From assembly GCA_002269645.1 (NCBI GenBank), contig NIVC01000254.1, positions 124,001 through 188,000 on the forward strand: a stretch of 64,000 nt of DNA, in the 5' to 3' direction. The DNA comes from Macrostomum lignano. Taxonomy: Eukaryota. How positions within the stretch are numbered: position 1 is the first letter of the stretch; the number at the start of each line of letters is the position of its first letter. Both the position numbers and the translations under genes were made by a program. Positions 15,200 through 63,599 of the stretch are shown one piece after another. The notes beneath the pieces are model-generated. The model was given only the letters and a program-made list of their open reading frames with translations, was not told the DNA's origin and ran no database searches.

Positions 15200-16662
15200 A
15201 TGGAGTATTCACTTACCTCCGACACGTCCGAGGCTGCTGGAGCACCAACCGAGGTTGGCACCGCGGCCCAGCCGGACATTCGCAACACCGGAACCCCCGG
15301 TGCCTCTCAATCTGCCGCTGCCGCCGCTCAGGATAATACCGGAGTGGCTGGACAAGACAGCGGACCTCAGATTTCAAAAAGAAGGCCCGTAGCATTGCTC
15401 GCTACAAAGCCTTTCTCCAGCGCAAAGCGGAGGAACGGAGGAATGCGAAAGCCGCCCCCCGGCCACCTCTGAGGAGGGTGCCGGTAACTCTGCGAACCCC
15501 GCGGAGGAGCCGACATCCGACAAGGGGGTGGACCCCGCGCGCCGGTCTGATGCGTCAGGTGCCGCCGAAGCTCCTGGTGCGGCTGGCCCCTCCCGTGACC
15601 GGACCTCTGCCCGTGTGGAAGCTCCCACGGCCGTGGAGGGATCCAAAGCGGGGGGCGCTGGCCAAACCACAAAGCCGAAGCGAACCTACGCGGCTATGGC
15701 CAAAAGGCAGCCGGCCCTGGTTATCCAAGGCCAGGAGACGCCTCTTACGGCCGAACAGCTCGACCTTATCTGGCGCAGGTTGGACTCCCACCTGGTCAAG
15801 ATGGCCTTGAGCGGCACTACCATTCGAGTCCAAAAGACGAAAGTCGAGGACCAAGCCCTCTATATCCAGCCCACCGACAGCCAGTCAGGACAGCAGCTCC
15901 TCGAGCTGCTGAAAACCTTCGACTGGGGCACGGAGCTGGAGAACCTGTTCATCTACAGGGAGGACGAGCGACCCCGGACACACCGGCACCGTGCCTGGAT
16001 CCCGGCTCGCAGCTGCATCACCAAGGCCGACGAGCTGCGTCACCTGCTAGTGGCTTCCAACCCGGAGCTACCGGCCAACGGTGTCGTAGTTCACGAGACC
16101 ATCTCCAAGCCAGGCGGAGACGGTTTCACGGCTATTCTTGGACTGTCGGATAGCTGGATGCTCCGCTACCCGGACATGTCCATCATCTCTGTCGGGCTGT
16201 TGCAGATTCAGCTCTTTAGCTTTGAGTCTGACGCCACCCGCCCACCGCCCCGGAGAAGCGTAAGCGGGCAGTCGGGGGCTCTGCCGGGCGGAAACGCCCA
16301 GGAAAAGAAGCTCCCGGCCGTCACGACCCCTCCGAGGACGTGGACCCTATCAGAGGGAAAGCCGCGAAAGCTGCAGCAACAGGCGGACGTGGGAAGGGCC
16401 GGAAACCCGCCCGGAACACTATCCGCTCTGGTCTGACTCAGCGCGCGAAACAGCTGCTGGACACCGCCAAGGCCCCCAACCGCAGCCACCACCAGCCCAG
16501 TGTCACCACTGCGGCCCCCCAGGAAAACCGGGCCGAGAGCGAGAATGCCGCCCAGGTAGCGACCCCGCCCTCGACCATGGAATCCATCCGGGAGGAGCCC
16601 ATGGAGCTGGAGCCTGGAGCTATCGGCGAGGCAGAAGAGGCAGCTCTCCTGCACAACTCGCC

Positions 16663-16666
<4 letters not shown>
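15200..16666 (+). CDS. LINE ORF1 (split by about three single-base frameshifts)
   Basis: ATG at 15200. Overlapping ORFs 15200..15472, 15528..16436 and 16340..16666 chain into one low-complexity/basic ORF1 upstream of ORF2. Confidence 0.7.
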
Positions 16667-20409
<3,743 letters not shown>

Positions 20410-31776: not shown

Positions 31777-33291
31777 TTAATCATAACCAAAAGAAACGCG
31801 CCCAAGGAGTTGGTGACTGCATGACCTGTGCACAAGAAGAACAAAACAGCTTGTGGAATCTAAGTAGGCACCGCTGCAGATTATAGATTGGCAGGTGGTA
31901 TTGTAATTGCCCTGTCGACAAGTTTGGCAATAGTTTACGTAGTTGAAACCCGAGTTTGTCAGACTGAAACTTTTCAAACGCTGCCCTGAGCTGCTTAAAA
32001 AAACAGCATTTCCATTAGTTTCGAACACTGCAATCAATCCAGAGTCAATGACAGCGACACAAAAGTCCTGACTGTCTATCAGCTTCTTCACACCACCGGT
32101 GCCGATGTTTAATCGATGTACAGCTGATGGAGTAGCCAGAATTAAGCTGCGTCCTGAAGCTGTTACACTGCGAGCGTCCTTCACATGATCAGGCAGCGTC
32201 AAGCTCTGCTGCAGCTCAAGTGACTCCAGAGAGAGGCAGTTCACGCAACCGTTGCTGAGAATGTACAGCTTCTCCATGTCATGAGTGAGGCTTATTGGAG
32301 CTTGGCACTGCACATTCTGGACACTTCGCAACTGGGTGCCAGTCAGGTCAGTCACAATTAGGGACTGATTGGTTCCAAGAAGAAATATCTGCTGAAGATG
32401 ATCAACAAGTGTGCCTGAAGCTAGCTGCACTCCGTTGTTACCAACGTTCCACTGACTGATTATTTGCATGTCTGATCTACAGACCATGAAAAACCAATAC
32501 TGCGAATTATTATTAGCCACACAAAAAGTGCTTCCGCTAGGGAGAGCTTGAAATCCGTTTTGGTTTGTCTTCCTGACTGCTTGAGCTGAGAAATAGTATC
32601 CAGTAGTGTTGCAGCAAACAGCAGCGAAAACATAGAAAACATTGCTGGTCAAATTAGGCGCCACCTTAACAGTGGGCACGGCAGACTCAAGTCTAGCGTT
32701 TCGTTTCTTATCCTCAGGATCCTCTGCCTCATCTGCAAAAGTCTCAACAACTTGTTGCAATCTCAGTACCTGCTGCACACTGTTGTCTACCGGATCGACA
32801 AACTCTTCTGATATCGGGGCATCCTCAAGCGAGATCTGGACCTCTTGATGCAGCCTGAATCCTTTAGTTGAAACACCTTTGGCTTCCTCCTCGCCGATCT
32901 CGACCGAAAGTTTCTCTATGAAGCCGAGAGCTATCAAATTCTGCTCCACATTGTCTATTTTAGAGTCCAATCTGCCGATCACATTTTCTCTGCACTGCTG
33001 CAATCTCTGAAAGATTGCGTCAAACAGGTCAGCGGCCTCAGCTCTGTCGCTTGTCAGATCAAACAGAGCTCCTCGGTTTGATTTTAGGAGTTCGTTTGTC
33101 TTCGCTAATGGTTCAGTGTTCTTTGATTTTATATCGGCGTATCTCCCCGCAAAAATCTTCTCATCTTTAGCGAGATGTCGCTCGCAGAGTTGCCCGCTCC
33201 AGAATTTGCCAAGACCTGAGGATGGCTCCGTGCAATGCGTCATGGAGCACGTCTGTGCATCGGATTCTGCATCGACGCTTTCTGTTGCCAT
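31777..33291 (-). CDS. Cluster gene A4 (504 aa)
   Basis: Intact ORF, 5'UTR acceptor before ATG, same architecture. Confidence 0.9.
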   Translation of the reverse strand: MATESVDAESDAQTCSMTHCTEPSSGLGKFWSGQLCERHLAKDEKIFAGRYADIKSKNTEPLAKTNELLKSNRGALFDLTSDRAEAADLFDAIFQRLQQCRENVIGRLDSKIDNVEQNLIALGFIEKLSVEIGEEEAKGVSTKGFRLHQEVQISLEDAPISEEFVDPVDNSVQQVLRLQQVVETFADEAEDPEDKKRNARLESAVPTVKVAPNLTSNVFYVFAAVCCNTTGYYFSAQAVRKTNQNGFQALPSGSTFCVANNNSQYWFFMVCRSDMQIISQWNVGNNGVQLASGTLVDHLQQIFLLGTNQSLIVTDLTGTQLRSVQNVQCQAPISLTHDMEKLYILSNGCVNCLSLESLELQQSLTLPDHVKDARSVTASGRSLILATPSAVHRLNIGTGGVKKLIDSQDFCVAVIDSGLIAVFETNGNAVFLSSSGQRLKSFSLTNSGFNYVNYCQTCRQGNYNTTCQSIICSGAYLDSTSCFVLLVHRSCSHQLLGRVSFGYD

Positions 33292-44073: not shown

Positions 44074-44430
44074 TAGAGGGGGCCGTAGCCCAGCGGTAGC
44101 GAAGGCTCTGGTGTGCCAGCGACCCAGGCTCGATTCCCAGTGCAGTCACATTAATTTGGGGCTGAATTGGAATCTCGGCTTGGCTCTGCTCGTGCAATTA
44201 ACGGCCTTGAGAGCCAACCCCCAAGGCGCAGTGAAGTGTACATGCCTAACAATTGATAAAGTTAGGGCCGCTGTACACTCCTGTGTGAGTGTGTGCCTGC
44301 GTACGTATCCGCGCGCTTGTATGCCTGCTCAGGGGAGTCGGCGGAATGGGCAGTAATGCCTCTCGCCGGTTGTGTGCCTATGTCGCTTAATGTGCGCCAG
44401 GGTGCACACACCCCTGCCTCTAATAAAAAA
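44074..44430 (+). mobile_element. tRNA-derived SINE, family 2
   Basis: A-box-like GTAGCCCAGCGG, B-box-like GGCTCGATTCC, AATAAAAAAA tail. TSD ATCTATACGYCC at 44062-44073 and 44431-44442; the empty site is visible at 21157 and 27867. Confidence 0.88.
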
Positions 44431-44817
44431 ATCTATACGTCCATATAGAAAACGATTCTAGACAACTGGGTACTTAAAATATTGGCATAAACATAAAAAA
44501 AGTTTCCGACAGTAGTAAAGTAGAAAAAGCTGTAAGCATGTCTTAGTGAATACTTTCGGAAAATTTCGGGAATGACAACACCATGCACATTGCTAGTATA
44601 AAAGTACGTTTCACATTCGTAACACTAAGATGGCAGCGGACATTGGGTTAGCTGATTTATCGTAAATAAGAGTGGGAAACAAAAATACGATTGTACATAT
44701 TAAAAAACCCAAACACCAATCGTCTTCTTCTGTTCTAAATTGGACAGCTCAATTTAAAAAAGCATTAGCGCTATACAGAAAGGCTAGCTACAATGAGATG
44801 GAATCTAATTTTTATAC

Positions 44818-45691: not shown

Positions 45692-47215
45692 CTAGCAGAT
45701 CGACACTCGCACTAAAACGCGATGGTTGCACGACAAGCTGCATATCAGCAGAAAGGAGCTCGAAGATTCTCGGCTGGCGCCACAGGAGCTAATTGACTGC
45801 AGAACATACGATACACCACAGTTAGCACACGTCTTGAGATAGTTTACGCCTAGTGGCACCAGATCAATCACTTTAATCAGTTGTCTGTTGCTGCTAAGAA
45901 GTGCAACGCTGCCATTATTTTCGCAGGCAGCCAGAAATCCAGATCCAATGTCTACAACGCACAGCACATTTTGACTATTGCTCTGCCAGACTTTTACGCA
46001 TCTTTTCGTGCCGAGACTCATTCGATACACTGCTGACTGGGTGGCCAGTATTAAACTACGACCAGAAACTGTCATATGACGAACATTCGCAGTGTCTTTC
46101 GAGAGTTTCATGCTATCCTGAAGTTCGCAAGTGTCCAGCGACAGGCAGTTTATGCAGCCATCACCGAGAATGTACAGCTTCTCCATATCGTTGACTATGA
46201 TCGGCATTTCAGCTTGAAACTGGACATTGTCAATAGTTCGAAGCTGTGTACCAGCTAGGTCCGTCACAATCAAAGAATTGTTATTACCAAGCATATAGAT
46301 TTGTTGCTGGTGATTCACAAGAGCTGCAGACACTAATACAACATTGTTCGATGGCTGATTTCTTTGGCTAAGTACCACGAGTTCGTTGCTATAGAAAGCG
46401 ATATGCCAGTTCGCACCATAGTTACCTACTGCAAGTACGCAGGAGCTTGGCAAAGCCTGAAAGCCATTCTGTTGCGTCTTGGAAACCAGCTGAGCGGAGT
46501 AAAAAAATCCATCCGTACGATTGCAGTTGAAAACGAATTGGATGTAGTTTGTAAGAAGAACCTTGGCAGTTGGCACAGCTGACTCCAGCAAAGATCGCAT
46601 TGCTGCCCCGTCTGCATCCTCGGCAATTGCAGCTCGAGTCTTTGTCTCCTGCAGCAGCTTCTGGACCAGTTCAACGCTGCTGTCAACTGGATCAGTCCAA
46701 GCATCGGAAATGGGAGCATCTTCAAGTGCGAGTTGCATCTTCTTGCTCAACTGGAAACTTTTAACAAGATCGCCAGACATTTCAGTCCCGTTGATATCTG
46801 CTCGAAGCTTTTCAAAGAAGTGCAACGACTTCAGACTGGCGTCCATGCTGTCGATCTTGGCGTCCAGCCTGCCAATGACGGTACTGCGGCAGCGCTGGAC
46901 AATCTCGAGAATCTCTTCAAACATGTCTGACGCATTGGCTCGGTCGCTGGTCAGCTCGAACAAAGCGCCGCGCGTCAAGTCCATCTGCTCGGCAACGCGG
47001 CGCATTGCACCATCGATGTTCGCCTGACGATAAGAGTAGTAGCTCTCTCGGAATCGGTCGGCGTCTCGCTTCAGATGGGCGGCGCACAAGGGCCCGTCCC
47101 AGTGGCTGCCCTGACCAGCAGCGTCTTGGCCACAGTTAGGCAGACTGCAAACATCGTGCTGCTGCTTGTTGTCGCCTTGCTGCTTTCCTGACGTTGCTTT
47201 TTTGGCAGAAGACAT
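45692..47215 (-). CDS. Cluster gene B4: full-length class B member (507 aa)
   Basis: Intact ORF with C-x4-C-x15-C-x2-H, coiled coil, propeller blades and CANC…SCNH. Confidence 0.9.
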   Translation of the reverse strand: MSSAKKATSGKQQGDNKQQHDVCSLPNCGQDAAGQGSHWDGPLCAAHLKRDADRFRESYYSYRQANIDGAMRRVAEQMDLTRGALFELTSDRANASDMFEEILEIVQRCRSTVIGRLDAKIDSMDASLKSLHFFEKLRADINGTEMSGDLVKSFQLSKKMQLALEDAPISDAWTDPVDSSVELVQKLLQETKTRAAIAEDADGAAMRSLLESAVPTAKVLLTNYIQFVFNCNRTDGFFYSAQLVSKTQQNGFQALPSSCVLAVGNYGANWHIAFYSNELVVLSQRNQPSNNVVLVSAALVNHQQQIYMLGNNNSLIVTDLAGTQLRTIDNVQFQAEMPIIVNDMEKLYILGDGCINCLSLDTCELQDSMKLSKDTANVRHMTVSGRSLILATQSAVYRMSLGTKRCVKVWQSNSQNVLCVVDIGSGFLAACENNGSVALLSSNRQLIKVIDLVPLGVNYLKTCANCGVSYVLQSISSCGASRESSSSFLLICSLSCNHRVLVRVSIC

Positions 47216-48102: not shown

Positions 48103-48412
48103 GGGGGTTGTAGCCTAGTGGTTAGAGCGTCGGACTCACGACTTGAAGGTTTGGGGTTCGATTCCCGATCCCACTGGAACAATTTGCGTCCTTGAGCGAG
48201 ACCACTTAACTCTGCATTGCTTCAGTTCACCCAGCTGTAAAATGGGTGCCAGCATTAGCTGGGGTAATTGAGGCTGTGTGTGTGGCGACCCCCCCCCCAG
48301 TCCTTGGACTGAACAGCCGTACGCAGCCTTCAGATGCGCCGCGCAATAGCTGCGGCTGAGCTGTGCCATTGGGGCAGGTGCAATCCAGCTCGTATTATTA
48401 CTATGATTTATT
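48103..48412 (+). mobile_element. tRNA-derived SINE, family 1 (CORE-like body)
   Basis: GTAGCCTAGTGGTTAGAGCG A-box, GGTTCGATTCCC B-box, body GCGTCCTTGAGC…CCCAGCTGTAAAATGGGT, (TTA)n tail. Second copy at 52799. Confidence 0.88.
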
Positions 48413-48891: not shown

Positions 48892-49332
48892 CTAGGTATC
48901 CTCTACAGCAGCGCCAGCCAGCGGCATCTCCTGGCGCCTCCGCTTGAGCAGACTTCGCCGCAGGCGGGCCTCTCGCTTCTCCAGCTCTTTGCGTCGACGT
49001 TCGTCGCGCAGTCGTCGGAATAATTCCGACAGCAGTCGGATGCTCTCCAGCTTGCGTTGAGCGGCCACAATGCGACGCTCCTCGGCGGCAATTCGCGCCG
49101 CCAGAGCCGCCTCCTCGGCTCGACGTTGCCTCTCGGCAGCGCGCTCAGCGGCGCGCTCCAAACGGCGCCGTTCCCGATCGCGCCGGCGACGCTCAAGTTC
49201 GGCGGCCGCCTCGGCTCGACGTCGGGCGGCTTCTCGACGACGAATGGAGCGAAGTGAGAGGCGGCCGGTTCGGTCGAAGTCGAGAGTTGGCAGAACCGAC
49301 AGCGCCGCGGGGGCGGATGACGAACCGTCGGA
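48892..49332 (-). CDS. AKAP17A: AKAP17A ortholog, last detected coding exon (coiled coil)
   Basis: DFDRTGRLSLRSIRRR…EERRIVAAQRKLESIRLLSELF matches AKAP17A SFDSTKHLS…EERKLLLAQRNLQSIRLIAELL. CAG acceptor, phase 0. Confidence 0.88.
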   Translation of the reverse strand, partial: SDGSSSAPAALSVLPTLDFDRTGRLSLRSIRRREAARRRAEAAAELERRRRDRERRRLERAAERAAERQRRAEEAALAARIAAEERRIVAAQRKLESIRLLSELFRRLRDERRRKELEKREARLRRSLLKRRRQEMPLAGAAVEDT

Positions 49333-50159
49333 CTGCGTTATTATAAATAAATTATAAAACACATTAAGTCGTTAAGGTTACATCAAACAAACTATGTAAC
49401 CTTAGATGATAGATTCTAAAACTAAAAAGATGCCTAAAAGGTTTAAAATTCCGCCACGAGCAACTGACTATTGAAATGAAAATGAAAATTGACCAGGTTT
49501 TCGTGTTATTTACACACATCAGCCAGCCTCCCCCCACAAGTGTGACGATTTAAAAGGTCAAAGTCAAAGTGCCGCTTTATACCATTGTATGAGTACGTGT
49601 CTGTTATCCACATATTGTGGACGTATTTCACACTTGTATACCCGATCCCGATGAAAACGGTACCTGGCCAAGAAGCCGTTTGAGAGTCGTTGAAGGTAAC
49701 ACAGGTATAAAATAGGAATAGGACTCTAGACGACTCTATACCAACGATATGTCACGGTACAAGTCGCCAAAAAGTCGTCAAAGTGTCAATTTCAGGCTTT
49801 GCTTTTATTGTCTGCGACTCTACAATGACTTTGGGGCCGAAGAATTGTATCCAAAGCGTGCAAGAGTCGCTGAGTTGCGTCCGACGTGCATATGTGCAGC
49901 TGTATGAAATAAACGTATTTCGCATTGATATTTATAACAACTCTATTTATTCTACTTCAGTTAAGTAGACAGTTAAGCGCTATACACAACGACTCTTAAC
50001 AACTTTTTTGTAACTCTAAAGATTTTGCAGTTCACATCATGCGTTCGGGACTCAACAGTTGCCTCTCTGTCGCATTGCAGTCGCTTGAGTCTTTAAAGAG
50101 TCGCATTAGAGTCACTACAGTCATTGGTGAGGTGTGTGCAATGGCTCTAGCGATTCTTG

Positions 50160-50406
50160 CATACATGCGCAAATGCTGGCCAACCTGGCCGATCTGGCCA
50201 TTGTAAATTGCGGTGGACCAGGGGTAGGTCACAAAAATGCCCAGCCTAAAAAATAGACGTAGTACTAATTAGATGACGAAGCATTTAGCCCTTATAAGAC
50301 AGTCATAGTTACTCCTGCCGTTTACCCGAAATTGCGTTAGGTTTCTTTTACAGGTAACTTGGTAAGTCGCATGGCCAGTGTAAATCAGGGGGGTTGCGCA
50401 TGTATG
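50160..50406. mobile_element. hAT-type MITE containing a 28S rRNA-derived segment
   Basis: TIR CATACATGCGCAA / TTGCGCATGTATG and perfect 8-bp TSD GATTCTTG. Confidence 0.9.
50264..50327 (-). other. Degenerate 28S rRNA H69-H71 fragment
   Basis: Minus strand GGGTAAACGGCAGGAGTAACTATGACTGTCTTATAAGGGCTAAATGCTTCGTCATCTAATTAGT vs eukaryotic 28S GGGTAAACGGCGGGAGTAACTATGACTCTCTTAAGGTAGCCAAATGCCTCGTCATCTAATTAGT. Confidence 0.9.
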
Positions 50407-50668
50407 GATTCTTGTCACGGTAACGTTGTTCTGTATGCTTTGCAGGCTTAAGAGACAATCTTTGCTTTTAACTTAGTAATTCGCTTCAACAAGCAAAAGC
50501 TGAGGACACGACCCCAGCCTCAATAATGATAAGTAGACCTGTACCATCTAAATCATTACTCAATGCGAAAAACAAAAGAATAATGTATAAATCCTTGTTT
50601 CAACCAAGCAAAGATCTTCCTGGCTCGAACATTTGCCTCTTTCACTCTCGCTATTCTTTGATTCGAAT

Positions 50669-51031
50669 TTTTTTTTATTAGAGGCAGGGGGGTTGTGTGA
50701 ACCCTGGCGCACTTTAAGCGACATGGGCACACAACCGACGAGAGGCATTACTGCCCATTCCGCCGACTCCCCTGAGCAGGCATACAAGCGCGCGGATACG
50801 TACGCAGGCACACACTCACACAGGAGTGTACAGCGGCCCTAACTTTATATTATCGTTAGGCATGTACACTTCACTGCGCCTTGGGGGGTTGGCTCTCAAG
50901 GCCGTTAATTGCACGAGCAGAGCCAAGCCGAGATTCCAATTCAGCCCCAAATTAATGTGACTGCACTTGGAATCGAGCCTGGGTCGCTGGCACACCAGAG
51001 CAGCTGCGCTACCGCTGGGCTACGGCCCCCC
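50669..51031 (-). mobile_element. tRNA-derived SINE, family 2 (reverse copy)
   Basis: Reverse complement of 44074-44430. TSD TTTGATTCGAAT at 50657-50668 and 51033-51044. Confidence 0.9.
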
Positions 51032-51337
51032 TTTTGATTCGAATAGATTGTCCGAACCTAACTAAACCACCCAGATAAGAAAAATAGATACTTCAAACGC
51101 CATGAAAGGATAACCGATCCTCTCCTTAGAACAGATCAAACTATCGGTTCGCCCCAAACAACAGAAACTTATAACAAACTTAAGCTAATTGAAACTTCGT
51201 ACTTGGAATATCATAAATATAATCTTGTGATTGCATCATCAGAACAAGGGACACAGTAGTGAGAATGTCCAGAAGACCAAGGAAGGACACCCAAACATAA
51301 CATAACAAAATATTTCGCTACTCAGAAAAGCCCTCAC

Positions 51338-51739
51338 CGAACCGAGCTGTGCCGGCATCAGCAGCAGCAGCAGTTTGGCACCACGAAGCGCGGTCATGCA
51401 CCGCTCGAATCCGGCGCAATCGACAAACTGGACGAAAGCTTCGAACCGGCCCAGAGGACCCGGAGCAGCGGCAGCAGTAGCAGCAGCAGAAGCAACAGAA
51501 GCCGAACCAGATTCCGAATTCAACAATGGAATATCAATTCGTCGAACAGCGCCAAACGATTCGAAAGCCGATCGAACAGCCGATTCAGTTGGCAGATCGA
51601 CTGAAGCACCACTCGGCTCAGGAATTTGTTGCGATTGACCTGCTGAGAGGCCTGGGACATCGTCTGAGAACCATGAGCAGGGCAATTGGCCAATACGAAC
51701 TGTGTCCGGTCGTTCGCCTGGCTCCATGGCGTCCAGACC
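51338..51739 (-). CDS. AKAP17A: AKAP17A ortholog, internal exon (RRM-like region)
   Basis: MEPGERPDTVRIGQLPCSWF…FGAVRRIDIPLL…FEAFVQF…MTALRGAKL. CAG acceptor and GTGAGG donor, phase 0/0. Confidence 0.92.
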
Positions 51740-52798
51740 CTGTTGACGTATTTGGAAAGCAAAGTAAACATTGACCATACTTATAGTTTATCCTTTGCGA
51801 GTTGGGTATGGGGGCTTCAGAAACCCGATACCCGAAAAATCACAACATCAAAAGCCACTTACCATCATAAACCAGAAATATCATAACATAGAAAATCATA
51901 TTTTGCTAGAATTTTCGGCGCTATGTTATTTCAAGTTTACGATAACGACCTCTTGCGACAGACGCAGGCACAGTTCACATAATGGTCCTGATCGAATTTT
52001 TCATCGTCAAGAATGTACACTTTCTGTGCAAGAATCGCATCAAGCAATATCCACGCCAATGTTTCGCAAGCCTTGAATGGCAGAGAATCGAATCTGGGAC
52101 ATCTTTGGCGAATTTGACTCGCAATTTATTGTCTCAATGCTACCAAAGCGTTCATAAAAGGGTTTATATTCGGAATAAGGCATCAGAACAGCTCAACTCG
52201 GGCGAAGAAAAATGACGAAATTCAAGGCTTTTATTTTCAAGTTCCTTATTATCTGTAGTTTGTACTCGTATTTTATGAAACATTAATATAGTTTCGTGAT
52301 TGCTTGGGATTTTTAGGTTGAGGCTTACAAATGTCAAGCGTAAGGACTTTTACACAATGTGACATCCAGCAGGTTTTCACTTTTTGGAATCCTAAATTCA
52401 GACCCAGGATACAACAAAAAGACAATGTGATTCTGATTTATAAAAAGATCCAGCCGGCATAAACTTTGAATCAGACCGAGATAAAGGAGCTCAATTGAAC
52501 GCTTGACGACCGCCTGGTACGAGATATGGCGATAAGAATTAGCCGAGCTTAAGAGAAAACACATGGAGAGAGAGCTCTACGAAAAAAACACCTAAAGTCG
52601 ACTGACCGATAAAACAGTGGCGCTACAGCTAGTGCTGCTTCTAGACCTGCTGATAATGGCTGAAAGAAAGCCCCAAAAAATGCGTTTTAACTTTTAATCT
52701 CTAGGCATAAGGGATCCAAGGGGTCCAGTAACTTTAGCGCTTCATGTTAGGGTTAAGTTTGACACCCATGTTTTTTGGCTCATCCTCACATGACAATA

Positions 52799-53120
52799 AG
52801 GTTGTGGTCAAGTGGTTAGAAGAGCGTCGACTGAAGAAGTCTGAAGAAGAAGAAGTCTCACGATTGAAAGGTCCGAGGTTCGATTCCCGATCCCACTGGA
52901 ACAATTTGCGTCCTTGAGCAAGACACTTAACTCTGCATTGCTTCAGTTCACCCAGCTGTAAAATGGGTGCCAGCATTAGCTGGGGGATGTGTGTGGCGAC
53001 CCTTCAGTCCTTGTACTGAACAGCCGTACGCAGCCTTCAGATGCACCGCGCAATGGCTGCGGCTGAGCGGTCGGTTGCACATCTGCCCATTAGGGCAGGC
53101 GTAATCAATTGTTATTATTG
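52799..53120 (+). mobile_element. tRNA-derived SINE, family 1 (GAA-rich insertion in the head)
   Basis: Aligns to 48103-48412. Confidence 0.85.
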
Positions 53121-53311
53121 ATTGTAAAACATTGCAGTGACTCAAAAAGACAAAACTTTTCAAGGGCCTTGACCTCACAGATTAACGCTGCTTCTCGTCC
53201 ATATCATAGAAACCCTTTGGAGTACTTTTTGATTACATTTTCCTATATGAATGGCTATTGCTCACTAAAAATAAATAAATTAAAGCCATAATTACATGCC
53301 CGAATACTCAC

Positions 53312-53730
53312 CTCGGCGTCCCTAAAGAACGCTTCCCAATCGTATTTGGTAGGACACGGCGGCTTTAATTGCACAGCCCGCACTCTCAAGAAGTCAGAAA
53401 ATCCGGCCAGTTTAATTCGGCCCCCGTCCAGCTGTTTGACAGCTCCGGCCAGAGCTCGGCGATTGGGCAATTCGCAATCGAGTCGAATCACGGACAAACT
53501 GGATGTCTGGACGCGCAGGTGGCTGAGCTGATGAGGCTTAGCCATCGATCGCAGCTGCTCCATCACCTCCCAGTTGGAGATAGAGCGGCATTTGTCGGTG
53601 AGCTGGGGCAGGTCCACTGCGATGCCTAAACAGGCGGCTGGCTTCAGGCAGAGCCGCAGCTCCGGGCACAGAGGCACAGCCTCAGTAGCGTCATCGCAAC
53701 GGGTCACTACGCCAGCGCGGGGCGGTTGAA
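53312..53730 (-). CDS. AKAP17A: AKAP17A ortholog, conserved N-terminal exon
   Basis: EAVPLCP…LKP…VDLPQL…SISNWEVMEQLR…LDGGRIKLAGFSDFLRVRA…DWEAFFRDA matches AKAP17A/XE7. CAG acceptor and GTGAGT donor. Confidence 0.95.
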
Positions 53731-53879
53731 CTGTGCAGGGGATTTGAAGGAGGGATCATTGTCAGTGATGGGAAGTCGGTGTTAGTCACCCATAGGTAAA
53801 GTAACTGATTGAGTTACCTCATTATCTAGAAAAGAGAATTCGTAATTGAATTTAGTAGTAGAAGAGAAGACGCATGATT

Positions 53880-54985
53880 AAGTTTACCTGGAAGAGGCAC
53901 CTGATTGAGTTTACCCGGAAGAGGCACCTGATTGAGTTTACCCGGAAGAGGCACCTGATTGAGTTTACCCGGAAGAGGCACCTGATTGAGTTTACCCGGA
54001 AGAGGCACCTGATTGAGTTTACCCGGAAGAGGCACCTGATTGAGTTTACCCGGAAGAGGCACCTGATTGAGTTTACCCGGAAGAGGCACCTGATTGAGTT
54101 TACCCGGAAGAGGCACCTGATTGAGTTTACCCAAAAGAGACATCTCATTGAGCTTTCCTGGAATAGAGCCACTTGATTGAGTTTACCTGGAAGAGACACC
54201 TTATTGAGTTAACCTAGAAGAGACATCTGATTGAGTTTACCTGGAAAAGAGACTCCTGTTTGAGTTTACCTGGAAAAGAGACACCTGTTTGAGTTTACCT
54301 GGAAAAGAGACACCTGTTTGAATTTACCTGGAAAAGAGACACCTGTTTGAGTTTACCAGGAAAAGAGACACCTGTTTGAGTTTACCTGGAAAAGAGACAC
54401 CTGTTTGAGTTTACCAGGAAAAGAGACACCTGTTTGAGTTTACCAGGAAAAGAGACACCTGTTTGAGTTTACCTGGAAAAGAGACACCTGTTTGAGTTTA
54501 CCTGGAAAAGAGATACCTGTTTGAGTTTACCTGGAAAAGAGATACCTGTTTGAGTTTACCTGGAAAAGAGATACCTGTTTGAGTTTACCTGGAGAAGAGA
54601 CAACTGTTTGAGTTTACCTGGAAAAGAGATACCTGTTTGAGTTTACCTGGAGAAGAGACAACTGTTTGAGTTTACCTAGAAAAGAGACACCTGTTTGAGT
54701 TTACCTAGAAAAAAGACACCTGTTTGAGTTTACCTGAAAAAAGAGATACCTGTTTGAGTTTACCTGGAGAAGAGACAACTGTTTGAGTTTACCTAGAAAA
54801 GAGACACCTGTTTGAGTTTACCTGGAAAAGAGACACCTGTTTGAGTTTACCTGGAAAAGAGATACCTGTTTGAGTTTACCTGGAGAAGAGACAACTGTTT
54901 GAGTTTACCTAGAAAAGAGACACCTGTTTGAGTTTACCTGGAAAAGAGACTCCTATTTGAGTTTACCTAGAAGACACCTGATTGG
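53880..54985. repeat. Minisatellite: 27-bp unit (GAGTTTACCCGGAAGAGGCACCTGATT) grading into a 29-bp unit (GAGTTTACCTGGAAAAGAGACACCTGTTT)
   Basis: Tandem copies are directly visible, with no unique spacers. Confidence 0.97.
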
Positions 54986-55583
54986 GTTCACTACTAGGCA
55001 CTTAATGAGTTACTAGAAAAGGGAAACATAATTGAGAAAAATTAATTGAATTTGCTTTCAGCAATTTTTTTCATCAAATACGAGTATACACAGTAATAAT
55101 AAAATAACTATCAGATATGGCTTTATTATATATTATATAATAATAAGATTATCTTTTGTATAATAGTCTACAAAAGTAAATTTAAGTTGAAAAATTAAGT
55201 TTTTGATATTTTATTTTAGTTAACTTAATAATAATCAACCTATGCCTAGACCCAGAAACCAACAATACTTAATATATTTAATGTGATGTTGATTTAAGGA
55301 AAGGTTACTAAACAAGACATTCAAAGAAAAGGACAGAGATTTACCTAAACAAAAAATGGGGAATTATATAACATATAGAGATTAGTGATTTGATCCTCAA
55401 ATCTTTGTAATACCAAAAATTAGAAAGAAAAGATTTATTCTACTATTAATGTTCTTCTTAGGCTAGACTTAAAAAATTTTTTTTTAAAATATTAGATACT
55501 ACTAATAAGAACTAAAATGCTGTTTATAATTCTAATAGTACTACTTTCAATAAACATAAAAATCCCTACACAACCTTGGTGGC

Positions 55584-55880
55584 CATACATGGGCAACAGT
55601 CGGCCGAGTTGGCCAATCTAGCCGACCGATTTGGCGACTAACCAAGGAAGTCGCAAAAATTCCCACCCTAAAAACACCCAAGTAGTAGTACTAAGTAGCT
55701 GACGAGGCATTTTGGCTTAATAAGAGAGTCATAGTTACTCCTGCCGTTTACCCAAACTTGCGTTAATATTGCTTTACGGTTTTTTTACATGCAAGTTGCA
55801 TTTTTGGCCAAAAACTACGTCGCATTTTTGTTAAAACTAAGTCGCACGGCCGACCGAATTTTGGAGGTTGCGCATGTATG
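55584..55880. mobile_element. hAT-type MITE (family of 50160-50406) containing the 28S segment
   Basis: TIR CATACATGGGCAAC / GTTGCGCATGTATG and perfect 8-bp TSD TTGGTGGC. Confidence 0.9.
55690..55753 (-). other. Degenerate 28S rRNA H69-H71 fragment
   Basis: Minus strand GGGTAAACGGCAGGAGTAACTATGACTCTCTTATTAAGCCAAAATGCCTCGTCAGCTACTTAGT. Confidence 0.9.
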
Positions 55881-57948
55881 TTGGTGGCATAATAACACTA
55901 ATAAAACATTTGTATTAGCAGTTAGAAATAGAGACCAATTACTTTATAGATAGCCATGACAGGTTTTTAGGTGCCAAATGTATACAGACTATTGAGTGTT
56001 TACTTGCTATTTTTAAAGTTCATAAATAACAATTTATTATTGTTTCCTTATTGTATCCTATATAGTGTATTCCTGTTTATTATATTGTTTATAGCAGAGG
56101 TATAGATATATAGAAACTTATATGCTATTGTCAAAGCTACCCCATATTTCTAAAGCTAACTAGCCCATCATTAATGTTTTTTCTGCTTCAAATTTGTGAT
56201 ATTATCTTTATGTTTTACAATAAGCAAAGCTTATTTAACTTTCCCAAAATTAAGAATCACACAAATTAAGAATCATAGACAAGCTATATATGCACTTACA
56301 ATCAAAAGCCTTTATATACATTTGGCACTACAAAGGCCATCACTGAAATGGGTGGCCTTGAAATGATTATCACTAAAGAAACTATAACTCCTAGAAATTT
56401 AAAAGACAAGGGTTTTTGATTGTAGCATAAAGGCATTTTGGTACTAGGCATTTTGGACAATATCTAGTGCAAATCAATCTTGCAATGTTTATGATGATAT
56501 AATGCAAGGAGGGAATGTAGGATTACATGAAAAAGGGAGTGTGGGATACTTATAAGAGAGATATGAGAAACAGATTAAAAAGAAAAATGTAGGATACACA
56601 GCAAGAGATGCAAATCATATATAGAGGAAGGGAATAAGGTACATATGGGGAAAATAGAAATACAAGAAAAGGGGTTCTAATGCAGATCTAACCTATGCAA
56701 TAGTCAATAGAGATAGATTTAGGCATATAAGTACAGTAGTCTTTGGTACAATTATTCTAAAAAAGCTAAAAGCCTTATTGCAACATTAGTAGCAATGACC
56801 AAGGTTTAAATTTAAGTTAGCTCTATAAACAATACAATGGAGATTGGTAAATGTATTAGAATTTATTATAAAAGCTTTTTTCATTCAAAATAAAAATAGC
56901 CCTAAAAGCATTGATCAAATATTATGTTTGATAAGCCAAGGATTATTGCACCTGGATAAACAAAGATTATTACACTAGCCATGACATGGATTATTTCATT
57001 AGGCCTACTCCATTAATGCAATTATTGCATTAGTGGAAGAAATATTTGCACTAGCAACTTGTTGTCTAGTGGATACTTGCTGTCTAGTGTTGCATCCCGG
57101 TGGAGTCTTCAACAGGTGGTGTTGCGTCGCAGTCGCGGAGTCCATGGTTTTGATTAGTAGTGTTGCAACACTATTGCAGTTGTCAATTGCCACAATTAAT
57201 AAACATATAGTCAGAAACCATATTTGGGTAAGATATCAAACCATATTCCGGGTTTTTGTTAACATAAATATTGTTATGTCAAGAGATGAGCTTCTTGTAA
57301 TTTTTTGTTTTATCTTGTTATTTTTCATTTCAATTTACTTTTATGTCATTTACAATATAACATGTGAATAGACAATATTTGCTGTTGCGGACTTGAAGTT
57401 AAAGTTTCTTGTTCTCCAGTTTTGATTATGACATTTGTTTTGCTAATGACAAACATTAAGAATTGAGTGAATTGAACTCAGATGAAATGACTGCTAGGCC
57501 AGCTGCTAGCCTGCTATGAATTATTAAAAACAAGTAACAAGTAATACTTGTTAGTTACAATGTATGCGCTGTTTTTTAACTGCTATACCTTTGTTGTTTT
57601 ACTTTTTATTGTTTTTAAATTTCATTTCTTTTTCCACGAAATTGAATGGAATACTTTTGTCCCTCACTCCATGGTCTTAGGAGTGAATGGCAGAATGGTA
57701 ATTGTCATTTTAAGTGAATGCTCTCCCCTTTCACCCCCCCCCTGGTCATTTGGTCAACAAACATTGGTGTTGCGTCACCAAGTCGCATCATACCCCCAGT
57801 CAACAAAATTTTGAGGGCACAATTTTGGCACCCATTTTGTGTGTCCATGGGTTTTTGAAACTTATTCCAATAGGGTTTGTAAGATACTTGCTATTTGCAA
57901 TTGTTTACTATTTGTTTACTATAATTGTATAAATATGTTACAATACAA

Positions 57949-58571
57949 TAGTGTTCCGCTATAGCCGTAAATATGGTAAAATAGGTGCCTATGGCAGCTA
58001 TGGATACACCTACGGTAGCTAGCTGCTCTTATGGCTACGACTACTGAAATATGGTAGTTGCTGTCACATTCCGTAGATTCCCGTAGCCGTAGTTATTATT
58101 GTTAAAAATTGAAAAAATATTAGAAACAGGTAGAGTAAAACAAATATACTTTTAGTAAACTGTATTATCAACCTAGAAACTTATAAAATATACCTAAAAA
58201 AGTACAATAAAACACTAGCAAACTCTAATTTTTATTAATGTGAAAAAGTTTAGTGTTAGTACTTTCAATAATGACTAAGTATTGTTGCTTTGAAAAAAGA
58301 CAAAATATAATCTTACAAAGACAATTAGGCCTGTGTTTCTTTTATTTTCTAATTTAATTTGCAGTTGTTTAAGCACTAGGTTATTTTCTTGATTCAAAAT
58401 ATTTTGTTTTTTTAGACTTTTTGTTAAAACTACGGCTACGGCTATGGGAACTACAAGAATATTGTAATTTCGGGGTCCCTACAGCTACGGAATATGGAGA
58501 ATTAGAGTAAGCCCTAGTTTTGCTTACGGCTACGGCTACAGTACATGGACCCTCCTTATGGTGGAACACTA
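57949..58571. mobile_element. Non-autonomous hAT element
   Basis: TIR TAGTGTTCC / GGAACACTA, perfect TSD CAATACAA, subterminal CCGTAG/CTACGG repeats. Confidence 0.9.
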
Positions 58572-58621
58572 CAATACAAAAGTAAAAAAATCATAAAAAA
58601 TAGCCAATTCTTATTCTAATT

Positions 58622-60200
58622 TAGTGATGGACCGAATGTCAATTTTGCAAGTTTCCTAAACTGAATCTAAATATACAAAAAAATTCTGAATCCAAATTTA
58701 AATATCCAAATATGTTTTCTATTGTAGATAAAAGCAAAAGGTAAATAGCAGGAGTAACTATGACACTTTTCTATGACGAAAATGCCTTATCATCTAATTA
58801 TTAATCCTATTAGTGCTATACATATATTACTGACAAGATTCAATCTAATCTCAAGCTCTATCTAGTATCTGAATTGAATTAAACTTACAATTGAACTCAA
58901 TTCCTTTAATTTAATCTAACTAATTCCAATTACTAATACTAACTGATATTACATTTGTGCAATTTGATAACTTTACCGTGTATAATGCATGTTAAAGACC
59001 ATTGCATTTGCATTTTGAAAAAAAGTGATGATTCAACTTAAACAATAATTTCTGCAATTAAATGTTTCTACAACTTTAGGTTAAATGCCTCAAAGGTCCT
59101 AAAGTTAAATAACTTTACTTATTAACACTTTTTAATAATATACATTGCTGCAAAAAAGACAATTGAAAAAACAAACAATATTACATTAAGTTTGTGTTCT
59201 TATTTTGTAGTAGTGCTTCAATACTGTATGAATTTTTAACAATAAAGGTATGATTTCTTAGAAACCAAACTTGTGCAAAATATTAGATAAATATTTTGTT
59301 TAAATGCATTGAATGTATTTGTTTTACCATAGTGAATATTTTGTTTTATGGCATGAAATAAGTTGGAATTATTTTTTGTTTTAATTATATGGGGAGGAAC
59401 CACTATATATAGGAGCTGTTTGAGTCGAAATATAACCAACTGTCTGTGACTTATAAGCAAAACATTGCAAACAAAATAGCAGTTCAACCTATATATTTCA
59501 AAGTCTTTTGAGTTTAATAGCAACTTATTCATTTACAAAAGCTGAGAGCAGTACCAAAAAACTTGCTAAGAGAGGGAATTGGGACTAATTCTTGGAGATA
59601 TACTAAGAGAGATGCTGTGACCCTCTAGTCTTGATAAATGCCCAATTAGGACAATTTACTAATACATATACTAATACTAGACTGCTCAGGCCATAAGCTA
59701 CCAGAACCTTATCAGAAAGGCCATAAGCTACCAGAACACTACCAGAAACACTACTAAGAATGCTACCCAGAAATATTCAAATGAAATTCTAAGAAGATTT
59801 AGAAGGCAAGATTTAGTGTCAGCAGTAAAAATATAATAGAGGAAATTATAAACCTGTAACAACTTTGGTGGCAGCTTGTAGGATATTTAATAAACACTAG
59901 CATCAATAGTTAGGAGTTTAGAAAGATAGAGCCAAAAGGCCTGTCATAGCTAGTGGCATTTAGTGGGATTAAAATTGACAAAATAGGAGGCAAAAAGCCT
60001 GTCACAATTTTTCTAATTGACCTTTTTAAAAGTTGTATTTTTTTTACAATAGCATAATTTTGTTTAGGTTTTTTATATTTGGAAGCACATTTGGAATTTT
60101 AGAAAATAAAATTTCCGAAACAAAAACATTTGGACTTCTAAAAAAGTGACACTCTTTTTTAGATTCGGAATCTGAATCCAAATATTTAGATCCATCACTA
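58622..60200. mobile_element. Non-autonomous hAT element (~1.58 kb) containing a 28S-like segment
   Basis: TIR TAGTGATGGA / TCCATCACTA, perfect TSD TTCTAATT, subterminal CTGAATCYAAAT repeats. Confidence 0.88.
58740..58800 (+). other. More degenerate 28S rRNA H69-H71 fragment
   Basis: GGTAAATAGCAGGAGTAACTATGACACTTTTCTATGACGAAAATGCCTTATCATCTAATTA. Confidence 0.75.
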
Positions 60201-60417
60201 TTCTAATTTAATTTTAATCTAAGACCAAATTGTATTAAAAAGATGTTTTAAAAGCTTTTTAACAAGATCTGTATCTTATTAAAATCTTAATTAAAATAAC
60301 TTAATTCTAAAAATAATTAGATTAAATAATTAATAATTTAATAAATAAACATGATTTTTAAGCTTAATATATACAAAAGGTTTATTTTATAATGCAGATT
60401 TAATACTTGATACTCAC

Positions 60418-60469
60418 ATTCCTTCATAGTTATTCTGGTAGCTTCTGTGTCTTTTCTTTGGTTAGCCAT
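60418..60469 (-). CDS. Candidate first coding exon of AKAP17A (MANQRKDTEATRITMKE)
   Basis: ATG followed by a GTGAGT donor in phase 1, compatible with the phase of the 53730 acceptor. No homology support. Confidence 0.3.
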
Positions 60470-61785
60470 AACTAGTAGTATAATAGCCTTATCTTATAAA
60501 TATAATTATTTTTTTTAATTTCTTGCCTCAAAGTAAGCCTTTAACTTGATCACACAGTGATACTCAAAAACATAATAAATATATTTGCCTTACCATAGTC
60601 TATAAAAAATATTGCACTTAGTAGCTACCTTTTAGGCCTACACAAGCAATTCAATTTTAAATTATCTACTAAGCCATACACTATCTATACAATTAAAATT
60701 ATAATTAATATTACAATTAATTAAAATTTAAAAAATGCAGCGATCTTTCGACGTTCAGATTAGTCCAGTGATGTTAGTTTACTGTTTCGTAAGTGACCTA
60801 GGCACTCCAGCCCTAGCTATAAGGATGGTCAGGTTAATATAGGCCTATTGAAGATCTATTAAAAAACTTGACCTTAGGTTTTGTCAAAAAGCTAAATATT
60901 AAATAGTTCTAAAGTCTGCTTTCTTTCAGCAAATTAACTACGCTTAGATTAAATAATATAGGGCTAGACGCATATATTTTTAATAGTTCTTTGTACCCTC
61001 GAGAATGGCAATTAGATCGTTTTCACGAGCGGTGCGTTTGAATTGGAACCAAAACCCTGATTTTTCGGTTTGCAGCGTTATTTATATTTTTGATAAAAAT
61101 AAAACCCGTCGGATTCTGCACTTGCATATGAAAGGGGAGAGGGATTTTACCTTGAACGTATAATGAAGCAAAGTAAATTTCTTTATCTAACTAACTAATA
61201 TTAACAGTTAGTCGCAGAAGTCGTCGAGCAACGCTGAAATAGCCTAGCTACTCTAATAAGTCCCTCTCTTGAACTCCAAATTTCATTAAAGGTAGACTTT
61301 CTCTGTCATGATGTTTTATTATAATTATAACTATATACATGTATTTGGACTGGAATAGTTGTTTCAAGTTATACATTTTTTAATTAATTCATATTCGTTG
61401 TGCTTTCATTTTTTCAGCAATAAACCTCAAATGCAAATTCCTCCCTTTCTTTTATTTGTTTATATCTTCATTTTAGTAGGGGTTTTCCGGTCTACAGTTG
61501 CAGTTTTCCTGTTGACAATATTCAATTCTGATATCCACGAGGCCTCAATTGATTTTTACAGGTAATAAAATTCCGTAATATAATACTTTCTGTGCCATTA
61601 GTTTTGAATGAATGACCTAAAATAATATTTTTTAGCTTAATTGGTCTCTGTCTACCTGTCGTGTACTGTATAGTAGAAGCGTAAAAATTTCTGGAAACGT
61701 AGCGACACGACACTGTGAACATTATTTATTTTTACTGGTTAATTCAAGCAATATGTAATATATATGTTGTTAATTCTCACTGCTA

Positions 61786-61937
61786 AAAATCCGCAGTGAG
61801 AAATGCCCCTTCTGCCTCCTCCGGTGTCGAGAATGCGGAGCAATCTGTGAATGCCCCGCCTTTACTCAGGACAGGCTAACCTACCTCGGCCCAAATCCGG
61901 ACCTCTTCGACGTTTTCAGGCCCGAGAATCTCTGCCA
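61786..61937 (+). mobile_element. Fragment of the LOA-type LINE 3' coding end
   Basis: High identity to ~20135-20288 (AAAATCCGCAGTGAG…GAGAATCTCTGCCA). Confidence 0.9.
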
Positions 61938-63200
61938 TCGCCGCACTGCTGCACCATCCGACGGGCAAGGGCGTCCCATTTGACTGGACTTCGGAATGCC
62001 AGACGGCTCGACGAGCTCAAAAAGGTGCCTAATTAGTCCTCCGATCCTGGTGAACCCGGATTTCACCAAGGAGTTCTCAGTCATCACGGATGCCAGTGGC
62101 AGCGGAGTCGGTGCAATTCTGATTAATCAAGGCGAGGCGGTGATCGAGTTCTCAAGCCGCGCGTTCAATTCAGCTGAGAAGAAATACTCTGCAACAGAAA
62201 AGGAGTGCCTGTCCATTCTGCACGTATTCAAAGTTTTTCGCCACTATCTTCTCGGCAAGCATTTCACGGTGCACACGGATCACTACATCGATTCACAGAG
62301 AGTTGACAGCTACGGCAGGCTAGAACGATGGCGTCTGCTGCTTTAAGAGTTCGACTTCACCGTCAAGTACCGAAGAGGCGTTGAGAACACAGATGCTGAC
62401 CCGCTGTCCAGACTGCACGGCCAAGAAGTTGCAGCTACGCAGCCGACTCCGGAAATCGACACTGAAGAGCTCAAAACTGCGCAGCGACAGGACCTGGAGC
62501 TCAGCGAGGTGATTCAGCTGGTGATGGACAAGGACGCAGAAATTGCACCCAGATGGCGGGCAGGACCACTGCAGCAACTTGGCAGAATCTGGAAGAAGCT
62601 GAAGCTGGATGATGACGGTGTTCTACTGCGCAAGTTCAATAACCCGGACGGCCTGCGGGAAGTTCCAGTGGTGCCAGCAAGGCTTCGACAACAGTTTTTG
62701 ACCATACGCTCACGAAGGTCTGGGAGGTCATTTCGGAGCCGAGAAATGCTACCGCACACTGAAACTGACCGCGTACTGGCCCGGCATGGCTGAAGACATC
62801 GTGCAACACTGCCAGAGTTGTTCTGTCTGTCAGGAGAAGAAAGCGGGCTCGCGGACCAGCGCGCCACTCGGAGAACTGCCAATCGGCTCGCCGTGGGATT
62901 CTGTGGCTATCGACATCGTCAAGGTGGCGCCATCATCGCGCGGCAACAAATACCTGCTGGTGGCTCAGGATCAGTTTTCCAAGTACCTGACGGCCGTGGC
63001 GATTCCTGACCAGACTGCTGAGACTACTGCTCGCGCCTTCCTCTCCATCGGCTCCCAGACTGGACTTCCCCGAGTCATCCACTCCGCTCAAGGACCGAAT
63101 TTCGAGTCTCAGCTTTTTCAAGACACTCTGCGAGGCCTGGGAGTCACGAAGACAAGAACAACGGCTTACAATCCCAAAGGCAATGGATTAGCAGAGTCGG
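61934..63200 (+). mobile_element. Ty3/gypsy pol fragment (end of RT, RNase H, integrase), defective
   Basis: PPILVNPDFTKEFSVITDASG…YSATEKECL…FTVHTDH; HCQSCSVCQ; AIDIV…QDQFSKY…TAYNPKGNG. Frameshifts and stops; the second catalytic Asp reads HSAQG. Confidence 0.92.
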
Positions 63201-63599
63201 GCAACAATTCAGTGCAGTCAGTCGTATCTCTCTGCCTTGGTCTACATAAGTACCCGACGCTTAGTAAAAATACGTGAAAAGACGAAAGAATTACAAAGCA
63301 TAAATTCTTTTGCGCACCGCATCGCGAGATCTGAGAGTAATGGAGGTAAAAGGTGAAAGAGAGTAGCTAGAAAGAATTTAGAGAGCTCGAACCATCAGGC
63401 CGCATTGCGTTTGTGAAGTTTCAAAGGACCTAAGGGCCAGAGAGCCTGGGAGGCTTCGCGAGCAGAAGTTTGCTGTCCCCTGGTGAACAATTACACCATG
63501 TACAAGATAAAATTCCGCGTGCTTTTTATATTTTATTCATAAACCAAAATACAAATTATTATTGATCTCTAAATAATACTTATACTACGAGTACTTACT

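Follow-up and report, generated by a model that had tools for sequence, protein, structure and literature searches.

Introduction

Sequences derived from ribosomal DNA (rDNA) have been described in several kinds of transposable elements (TEs). A 2024 review covers Pokey/mPok, which carry intergenic-spacer repeats, the 5S-derived short interspersed nuclear elements (SINEs), Cassandra, Ajax and SINE28 (PMC10946416). The authors of the review hold that most rDNA modules give the TE no benefit (PMC10946416, 'Ribosomal DNA in TEs'), and a DNA transposon or miniature inverted-repeat transposable element (MITE) with a 28S coding fragment is not among their cases. Kojima et al. described in 2016 an actinopterygian R2 lineage with 28S-derived sequence in its 3' untranslated region, and canonical R2 and other 28S-targeting elements are present in the planarian Schmidtea (PMC5035012). 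The subject here is three non-autonomous DNA transposons, E1, E2 and E3, each of which carries a decayed piece of the 28S rRNA gene. They lie in a stretch of 64,000 nucleotides from the flatworm Macrostomum lignano (assembly GCA_002269645.1, contig NIVC01000254.1, positions 124,001 to 188,000 of the forward strand). This whole stretch is called the window, and the positions given below are those of the window.

Polyploidy is recent in M. lignano, whose three subgenomes show about 2% difference in single-nucleotide polymorphisms (SNPs) (PMC10733133). The repeat annotation of its genome dropped short and unclassified repeats (PMC5730564). Literature searches turned up no description of a MITE or hAT element that carries a piece of 28S, and because neither the review nor these searches give such a case, the elements are filed here as a new example of a known phenomenon, TE-borne rDNA.

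The 28S-like segments and their carrier elements

The first BLAST query of the window was a 28S reference sequence, and genuine eukaryotic rDNA contigs obtained from a metagenome scan (L051, L049, L116, L100 and others) were then used in its place. The reference sequence matches three sites and nothing else of note. The metagenome contigs match the identical three sites with E values of 1e-17 to 2e-7, and with up to 10 kb of rDNA queried there is no match anywhere in the window outside these segments. Matches of this strength lie far outside what chance would give, and the three 28S-like segments are real. A sequence-only reading of the window had placed ~62-bp 28S matches at these sites; real rDNA bears them out, and the limits given for E1 and E2 were too narrow, as the 28S similarity reaches ~20-25 nt further 5' in both.

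Over 60-90 nt the segments are 75-81% identical to 28S, indels included. The E1 segment, which has its strict core at 50264-50328, is 89.6% identical to real rDNA over 67 nt (E=1e-17). The E3 segment matches real rDNA with E=2e-7 and the decayed rDNA contig L019 with up to 82% identity (E=2e-10), and within the window it forms inverted-repeat pairs with the segments of E2 (I1) and E1 (I2). Rfam models gave nothing at the three sites, either at gathering thresholds or at E<=10; the Rfam large-subunit model does not report pieces this short and decayed.

Each segment lies inside an element that has inverted repeats and a perfect 8-bp target-site duplication (Table 1), as the sequence-only reading had it, except that CATACATG, which had been taken for a target-site duplication, is the start of the inverted repeat. 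E1 and E2 are 80% identical in full-length alignment, and the similarity of E3 to them is confined to the 28S-like 61-70 nt. In all three the 28S-like piece stands ~80-130 nt from one element end and reads 5' to 3' inward from that end. CTGAATCC motifs recur in the subterminal sequence of E3. Searched for coding capacity, E1, E2 and E3 gave short open reading frames (ORFs) and stop-free frames only, and the longest ORF of E3 (98 aa) has no relatives.

MITEs are under about 600 bp, with inverted repeats, a target-site duplication and no coding capacity. E1 and E2 have this size and structure; the 1579 bp of E3 make it a larger non-autonomous element and not a MITE. All three had been called hAT-type. 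The inverted repeats of hAT elements begin with the consensus 5'-(C/T)A(A/G)NG, and duplications of 8 bp are also made by P, Merlin, Novosib and some Mutator elements. E3 starts with TAGTG, which fits the consensus, and this end together with the 8-bp duplication supports putative membership of E3 in the hAT superfamily. E1 and E2 start with CATAC, which does not fit, having C where the consensus has G at position 5; their only tie to hAT, for which they are at most candidates, is the 8-bp duplication. The hAT target preference nTnnnnAn, tested on only three sites, gives T2 and A7 together in none of the three duplications and T2 alone in those of E2 and E3. Neither the window nor the M. lignano loci that were fetched contain an autonomous element with matching ends and a hAT transposase.

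SINEs have a poly-A or simple-repeat tail, duplications of variable length and no inverted repeats. An rRNA-derived SINE of the SINE28 or SINE3 kind is ruled out for all three elements by their inverted repeats, exact 8-bp duplications and lack of a tail.

A link between the terminal TTGCGCATGTATG of E1 and E2 (right end of E1, 50394-50410) and GCGCATGAATGG of 28S was considered and rejected, as it is not significant (E about 2-4 for the window). In real 28S, GCGCATGAATGG starts four bases past the captured piece and is colinear with the terminal TTGCGCATGTATG. Part of the E1 match lies inside the target-site duplication.

Table 1. Positions of the elements, their 28S-like segments and the host gene in the window, and state of the homeologous loci
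Feature	Position	Strand	Description
E1 28S-like segment	50264-50347	-	H68/H69-H71 region (helices 68/69 to 71); 67/84 identical to the 28S reference, E=3e-15
E2 28S-like segment	55690-55777	-	72/89 identical to the 28S reference, E=9e-15; real rDNA E=4e-15
E3 28S-like segment	58740-58800	+	46/61 identical to the 28S reference, E=7e-8
E1	50160-50406	- (strand on which the 28S-like piece reads 5' to 3')	247-bp MITE; inverted repeat CATACATGCGCAA, 13/13
E1 target-site duplication GATTCTTG	left 50152-50159, right 50407-50414	.	perfect 8 bp
E2	55584-55880	-	297-bp MITE of the E1 family; E1 inverted repeat CATACATGCGCAA, 12/13
E2 target-site duplication TTGGTGGC	left 55576-55583, right 55881-55888	.	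perfect 8 bp
E3	58622-60200	+	1579-bp non-autonomous element; inverted repeat TAGTGATGGA(C/T)C; ends TAGTGATGGACC / GGATCCATCACTA
E3 target-site duplication TTCTAATT	left 58614-58621, right 60201-60208	.	perfect 8 bp
Host gene BOX15_Mlig001119g3	48892-60469	-	AKAP17A-like RRM protein, 437 aa; tblastn of PAA86992.1 against the window
NIVC01000829.1 (L002)			near-identical duplicate; E1 present; fetched locus ends short of the E2 and E3 regions
NIVC01001178.1 (L127)			E1, E2 and E3 present; E3 99.1% identity
NIVC01000293.1 (L128)			E1 present, E2 absent, E3 present (part covered, 94.8%)

Mobility and age of the elements

Exon mapping of PAA86992.1 onto the window places E2 and E3 in intron 1 and E1 in intron 3 of an AKAP17A-like gene. 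Relative to the pre-mRNA of this gene the 28S-like pieces of E1 and E2 are sense and that of E3 is antisense. Homeologous loci were obtained through the AKAP17A-like protein cluster (Table 1). In NIVC01000293.1 the E2 site is a clean empty site, CCTTGG(C/T)GGCATAA, with a single copy of the duplication; the contig reads ...CACAACCTTGGCGGCATAATAAC..., which is the predicted E2 empty site bar one SNP. Because of this empty site, E2 is a genuine transposon insertion that is later than the split of one subgenome lineage.

At the time of its insertion the 28S-like piece of E2 was already only about 81% identical to 28S. E1, which is older than E2, shares with it several derived lesions relative to 28S, namely the G>A change discussed below, an insertion at TCTTA^, the loss of TA/GTAG following AAGG, and AGTACTAC where 28S has AGTGACGC. 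Since these lesions are shared, the piece was degenerate already in the common ancestor of the two, and the E1/E2 family transposed while carrying a degenerate 28S copy. The claim that an rDNA piece sits inside DNA transposons and was moved by them is upheld by the empty site of E2 and by the shared lesions of E1 and E2 at separate loci.

Further differences between the homeologs were observed. Differences cluster in the left arms, with 8 events in E1 (50173-50254) and 4 in E2 (55592-55653) against 0 in each right arm, and the surrounding intron is near identical; this may be gene conversion from other family members. A ~361-bp repeat has two copies that are 95% alike (44078-44431 and 50670-51030), and the second is absent in NIVC01000293.1, which makes it a second insertion polymorphism.

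The shared G>A change and the number of captures

E1, E2 and E3 all have GGCAGGAG at the place of GGCGGGAG, which we take to be the sequence of G-type 28S. This sharing had been seen before and had been read as a sign of a common captured ancestor. The sharing stands, and the reading of it is weak. The change from GGCGGGAG to GGCAGGAG is a CpG-to-CpA change, and a metagenome scan for the A-type 17-mer GCAGGAGTAACTATGAC gave at least 120 loci. Among the matches listed, many are genuine rDNAs with a compensating C>T opposite the A in the H69 stem (GGCAGGAG...CTCTTTTAAGG). Others are decayed or interrupted rDNAs with an uncompensated A (L012, L028, L038 and L061), copies with heavy CpG decay, for example L019, where GGTAAATAGCAGGAG and GCCTTGTCATC-like changes occur as they do in E3, and chance matches at bacterial ribosome-binding sites; no Macrostomum MITE copies are among the matches listed. 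A scan of viral sequences for the same 17-mer gave 2 chance-like matches. In E3 the ancestral state according to the homeologs is AAACAGCAGG, in which both CpGs have become CpA, and the third CpG of the segment is TA, so that 3 of its 3 CpGs are mutated. As a CpG transition that recurs in unrelated rDNAs and pseudo-rDNAs, in a segment of E3 that has lost every CpG, the G>A change was rejected as proof of a single capture.

It is possible that the same 28S region was captured independently by two element types. The H69-H71 region would then be a hot spot of breakage, since R2 (putative in M. lignano) and other site-specific elements target it, and its broken or repaired ends could be unusually available as filler when excision gaps are mended. 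Several features fit this explanation: the similarity of E3 to E1 and E2 ends with the 28S-like 61-70 nt, the central lesions are small indels in E1 and E2 and a same-length replacement in E3 that leaves 1 of 9 central bases matching, and the sole shared 'diagnostic' change is the recurrent CpG transition. Pieces of the H69 region also lie outside an rDNA context in many unrelated metagenome contigs, including one in which TTAAGG is joined to a reverse transcriptase. However, the 28S-like piece has a common 3' boundary in both element types (...CTAATTAGT / ...CTAATTATT), and the next ten non-28S bases, AGTACTACTA in E2 and ATTAATCCTA in E3, show a weak agreement of 7/10. In addition, AAAATGCC is common to E2 and E3 where 28S has CAAATGCC, and the orientation and subterminal placement are identical. 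Taken together, the boundary, the junction bases, AAAATGCC, the orientation and the placement are better evidence for one origin than the G>A change, and thin evidence still. A single origin is moderately favored over independent capture, which we regard as doubtful.

Conservation of the core

Between E1 and E2 the strict core is identical at 57 of 65 positions (88%), as against 52% of the ungapped columns in the 5' arm and 66% in the 3' arm (Fisher p=1e-4). The earlier claim that the core is better conserved than the interiors of the two MITEs holds for this pair. The contrast would be expected if the 28S-like piece were a working transposon module kept by selection among elements, for example a putative platform for a transposase accessory factor or for a nucleolar or rDNA-binding host protein that aids excision, integration or nuclear localisation. 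The use of the same segment in the same orientation and subterminal position in E1/E2 and E3 despite their unrelated ends also favors such a module, as do the blocks GGGTAAACGGCAGGAGTAACTATGAC and AAATGCCTCGTCATCTAATTAG, which are 83-97% intact in all copies, and the transposition of E2 with the piece aboard. On the other side, the contrast comes from two paralogous copies only, and large indels account for part of the difference between the arms of E1 and E2, a sign of modular reshuffling and not of uniform divergence. In the E3 core, 6/30 positions of one block and 3/23 of the other have changed, and after insertion this core has mutated faster than the rest of E3. A module selected among elements is considered unlikely. 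The contrast also leaves room for constraint in the transposing lineage, or for a modular history with arms of greater age than the core.

The homeologous copies give the rates of change since insertion. These are 9/378 (2.4%) for the core and 56/2644 (2.1%) for the rest of the elements (p=0.70). Between E3 and its copy in NIVC01000293.1, 5/61 core positions and 29/591 of the rest have changed, so the core is at least as fast. Because core and rest have changed equally since insertion, no host-level constraint on the copies is seen, as far as these rates can indicate.

The R2 target core and a possible host role

In real sequences the R2-type junction follows ...CTCTTAAGG. The 28S part of four metagenome contigs (L012, L028, L047 and L061) stops exactly after TTAAGG, and L047 runs on into an ORF of 1076 aa with a zinc-finger-like N-terminus and a reverse-transcriptase domain. 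In E1, E2 and E3, respectively, the block to the left of this junction is identical to 28S at 28/30, 29/30 and 24/30 positions, and the block to the right at 22/23, 21/23 and 20/23. The central 11 bases, TTAAGGTAGCC, have 5, 4 and 3 matches and are the most damaged part in every copy, through small indels in E1 and E2 and through same-length replacement in E3, whereas the flanking blocks are 83-94% intact. The intact recognition core CTCTTAAGGTAGC is absent from all three. Since only 3-5 of the 11 central bases match, and with indels in E1 and E2, the substrate of R2, I-PpoI or a Pokey-like transposase is gone from the three elements. The damaged site fits donor rDNA that was already scarred at the hot spot, or the loss of copies that attract insertions; both of these are speculative. 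Protein binding to the intact flanking blocks is possible.

A decoy or small-RNA role had been suggested earlier. In the form of a role for the host, the piece would be a decoy for an rDNA-targeting protein (R2, an I-PpoI-like nuclease or a Pokey-like transposase) or a source of small RNAs against rDNA or rDNA-resident elements. The R2 site falls within the segment, the blocks beside the cut site are well kept, and other flatworms have canonical R2 and further 28S-targeting elements (PMC5035012). The antisense orientation of the E3 piece to the host transcript would also suit such a role. The destruction of the recognition and cleavage core TTAAGGTAGCC in all three copies, next to well-kept flanking blocks, argues against a cleavable decoy and undercuts that part of the proposal. 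The lack of post-insertion constraint counts against any host role, as does the occurrence of only three copies in about 110 kb, and small-RNA targeting would be poorly served by a piece that, over 60-90 nt, is 75-81% identical to 28S and has indels.

The small-RNA idea is not supported by folding either, which gives no sign of a stable RNA structure. Compared with shuffled controls, the 28S-like segments show no gain in folding stability (z +0.5 to +1.5), and in E1 hand pairing finds the H69 stem broken by A-C and G-G. For the whole elements z is -2.0 (E1) and -1.3 (E2), values that come from pairing of the 13-bp ends; the idea of a hairpin or small-RNA precursor was rejected, as the 13-bp inverted repeat alone pairs and there is no long hairpin. 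A host role is highly improbable. A further explanation, itself very unlikely, is that the piece is a selected module of two unrelated families in which the protein-contact blocks are kept and the cut site is lost, giving a non-cleavable platform for an R2-type or nucleolar protein that would serve tethering, mobilisation or a host decoy.

Searches for further copies gave none in ~25 kb of extra non-homeologous M. lignano DNA, and the ~110 kb of M. lignano DNA made up by the window and the fetched loci contains three insertions plus homeologous copies only. A search of 1.84 billion representatives with the 46-aa frame across the E1/E2 core recovered no E1 or E2 copies; it gave one unrelated repeat protein and two short ORFs from tandem H69 arrays.

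Pieces of H68-H71 outside the normal rDNA context were observed in unrelated metagenome contigs (L016/L087, L085/L115, L129, L003/L013/L121, L099/L112 and L047). They take the form of tandem arrays of H69 units, a 31-nt piece set between stretches of non-rDNA, a ~75-nt piece that immediately follows an ORF, and 28S cut after TTAAGG and followed by a reverse-transcriptase ORF, which is an R2-type junction. Dispersed fragments of this region of 28S seem to be common.

Origin and fate of the 28S-like piece

In the explanation that we prefer, the piece is probably a passenger captured from rDNA, which cut-and-paste transposition dispersed and whose intronic copies now decay neutrally. Chimeric derivatives of Ds, P and hAT elements arise through template switching or filler DNA during the repair of excision gaps. 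In the M. lignano lineage, a 28S piece from helix 68/69 to helix 71, spanning the R2 insertion site, would have joined the internal subterminal sequence of a non-autonomous DNA transposon, likely by the same route. Perhaps the donor rDNA unit already had a scar at the R2/TTAA hot spot. As a passenger, the piece would then ride along, with transposase supplied in trans recognising the inverted repeats and subterminal motifs and not the 28S sequence. The family kept transposing with the decayed copy, E2 inserting after one subgenome had split off, and the copies are now intronic fossils that mutate at the background rate. The piece in E3 is most simply explained by an exchange of internal sequence between elements; a second capture would be less likely.

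Several points weigh against a passenger that is simply neutral. In two element types with unrelated ends the piece stops at the same 3' boundary, points the same way relative to the nearer end and lies at a comparable subterminal distance (~80-130 nt), and this match in boundary, orientation and placement looks less accidental than a random passenger would. The contrast between the E1/E2 core (88%) and arms (52-66%) is not predicted by a neutral master-copy model. The homeolog test includes only 9 core substitutions, a number that is compatible with weak constraint, and the mechanism of capture is one that we infer.

If the piece is a passenger, the elements are a datable animal case of a DNA transposon that acquired and spread rRNA coding sequence. 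Such copies can confound rDNA read mapping, surveys of R2 sites and the annotation of pseudo-rDNA in Macrostomum, and the order of the subgenome splits in M. lignano can be marked by the presence or absence of E2. If the core were selected across a large family, this would suggest that a transposon or the host exploits part of the rDNA target site that is most conserved in animals.

The host gene and other features of the window

The host gene, on the minus strand, has exons at about 60469-60419, 53728-53312, 51739-51338 and 49332-48892. Reconstruction gave the intron 51337..49333, which an exact protein look-up confirmed. E3 is 219 nt from exon 1. Intron 1 also contains a minisatellite (53822-54990) with units of 27 nt and 29 nt and a consensus around TTGAGTTTACCTGGAAAAGAGACACCTGT, the length of which varies between homeologs. 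The ratio of observed to expected CpG is 0.54 in the AT-rich, transposon-filled intron block 55000-62000, 0.82 in the window and 0.99 at 48-54 kb; the ratio in 55000-62000 hints at CpG-biased decay of old repeats in this flatworm. Two tRNA-like pieces, at 48104-48173 (Rfam tRNA, 33.8 bits) and about 52800-52890, suggest tRNA-derived SINEs.

On the minus strand, 6671-47215 holds a tandem array of about seven intronless paralogues of ~500 aa (e.g. 12401-13909, 25086-26603, 31777-33291 and 45692-47215). They have a conserved Cys-rich N-terminus, no Pfam domain, and matches to Macrostomum lignano hypothetical proteins only, and the array looks like a lineage-specific expanded gene family. A non-LTR (long terminal repeat) retrotransposon at 15528-20409 has an ORF1 and an ORF with endonuclease, reverse-transcriptase and RNase H domains. 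The closest relatives are 76% identical and come from short Logan/ENA contigs, and a search with the reverse transcriptase returned no M. lignano genomic loci; a related element is inserted in NIVC01000293.1, between the positions that match 56237 and 56283 of the window. An integrase-like ORF at 62786-63277, in a GC-rich block at the window end, is probably from an LTR retrotransposon.

Comparison with known systems

Pokey and mPok, a piggyBac element and MITEs of Daphnia, resemble the elements described here in being a cut-and-paste family with internal sequence derived from host rDNA (PMC10946416 Table 2). They differ in the sequence that is carried, which is intergenic-spacer repeats in Pokey and a 28S coding fragment here. 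As a piggyBac element, Pokey has TTAA as its target and inserts into the 28S gene, whereas E1, E2 and E3 made 8-bp duplications in gene introns and carry a TTAA site that is damaged.

SINE28, SINE3/AmnSINE1, Cassandra and Ajax are likewise mobile elements that disperse a module derived from an rRNA gene (PMC10946416). SINE28 and the 5S-derived elements are retroelements, in contrast to the DNA transposons with inverted repeats and target-site duplications found here. In the 5S-derived elements the module is an internal RNA polymerase III promoter, whereas a use for the module is not evident in the M. lignano elements. The actinopterygian R2 lineage shares with them a short copy of 28S from the neighborhood of the R2 target (PMC5035012). 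That lineage is a 28S-specific retrotransposon with an internal copy tied to a shifted insertion boundary, and the elements described here are neither rDNA-specific nor retroelements.

In transduplicating or Pack-type elements, and in chimeric Ds/hAT elements made by abortive gap repair, a host fragment is mobilised between transposon ends, and the same mechanism may apply here. Pack-type and transduplicating elements usually carry fragments of protein-coding genes and are mostly from plants. The M. lignano elements differ in that the fragment is rRNA coding sequence, the host is an animal, and the fragment is shared by two types of element ends.

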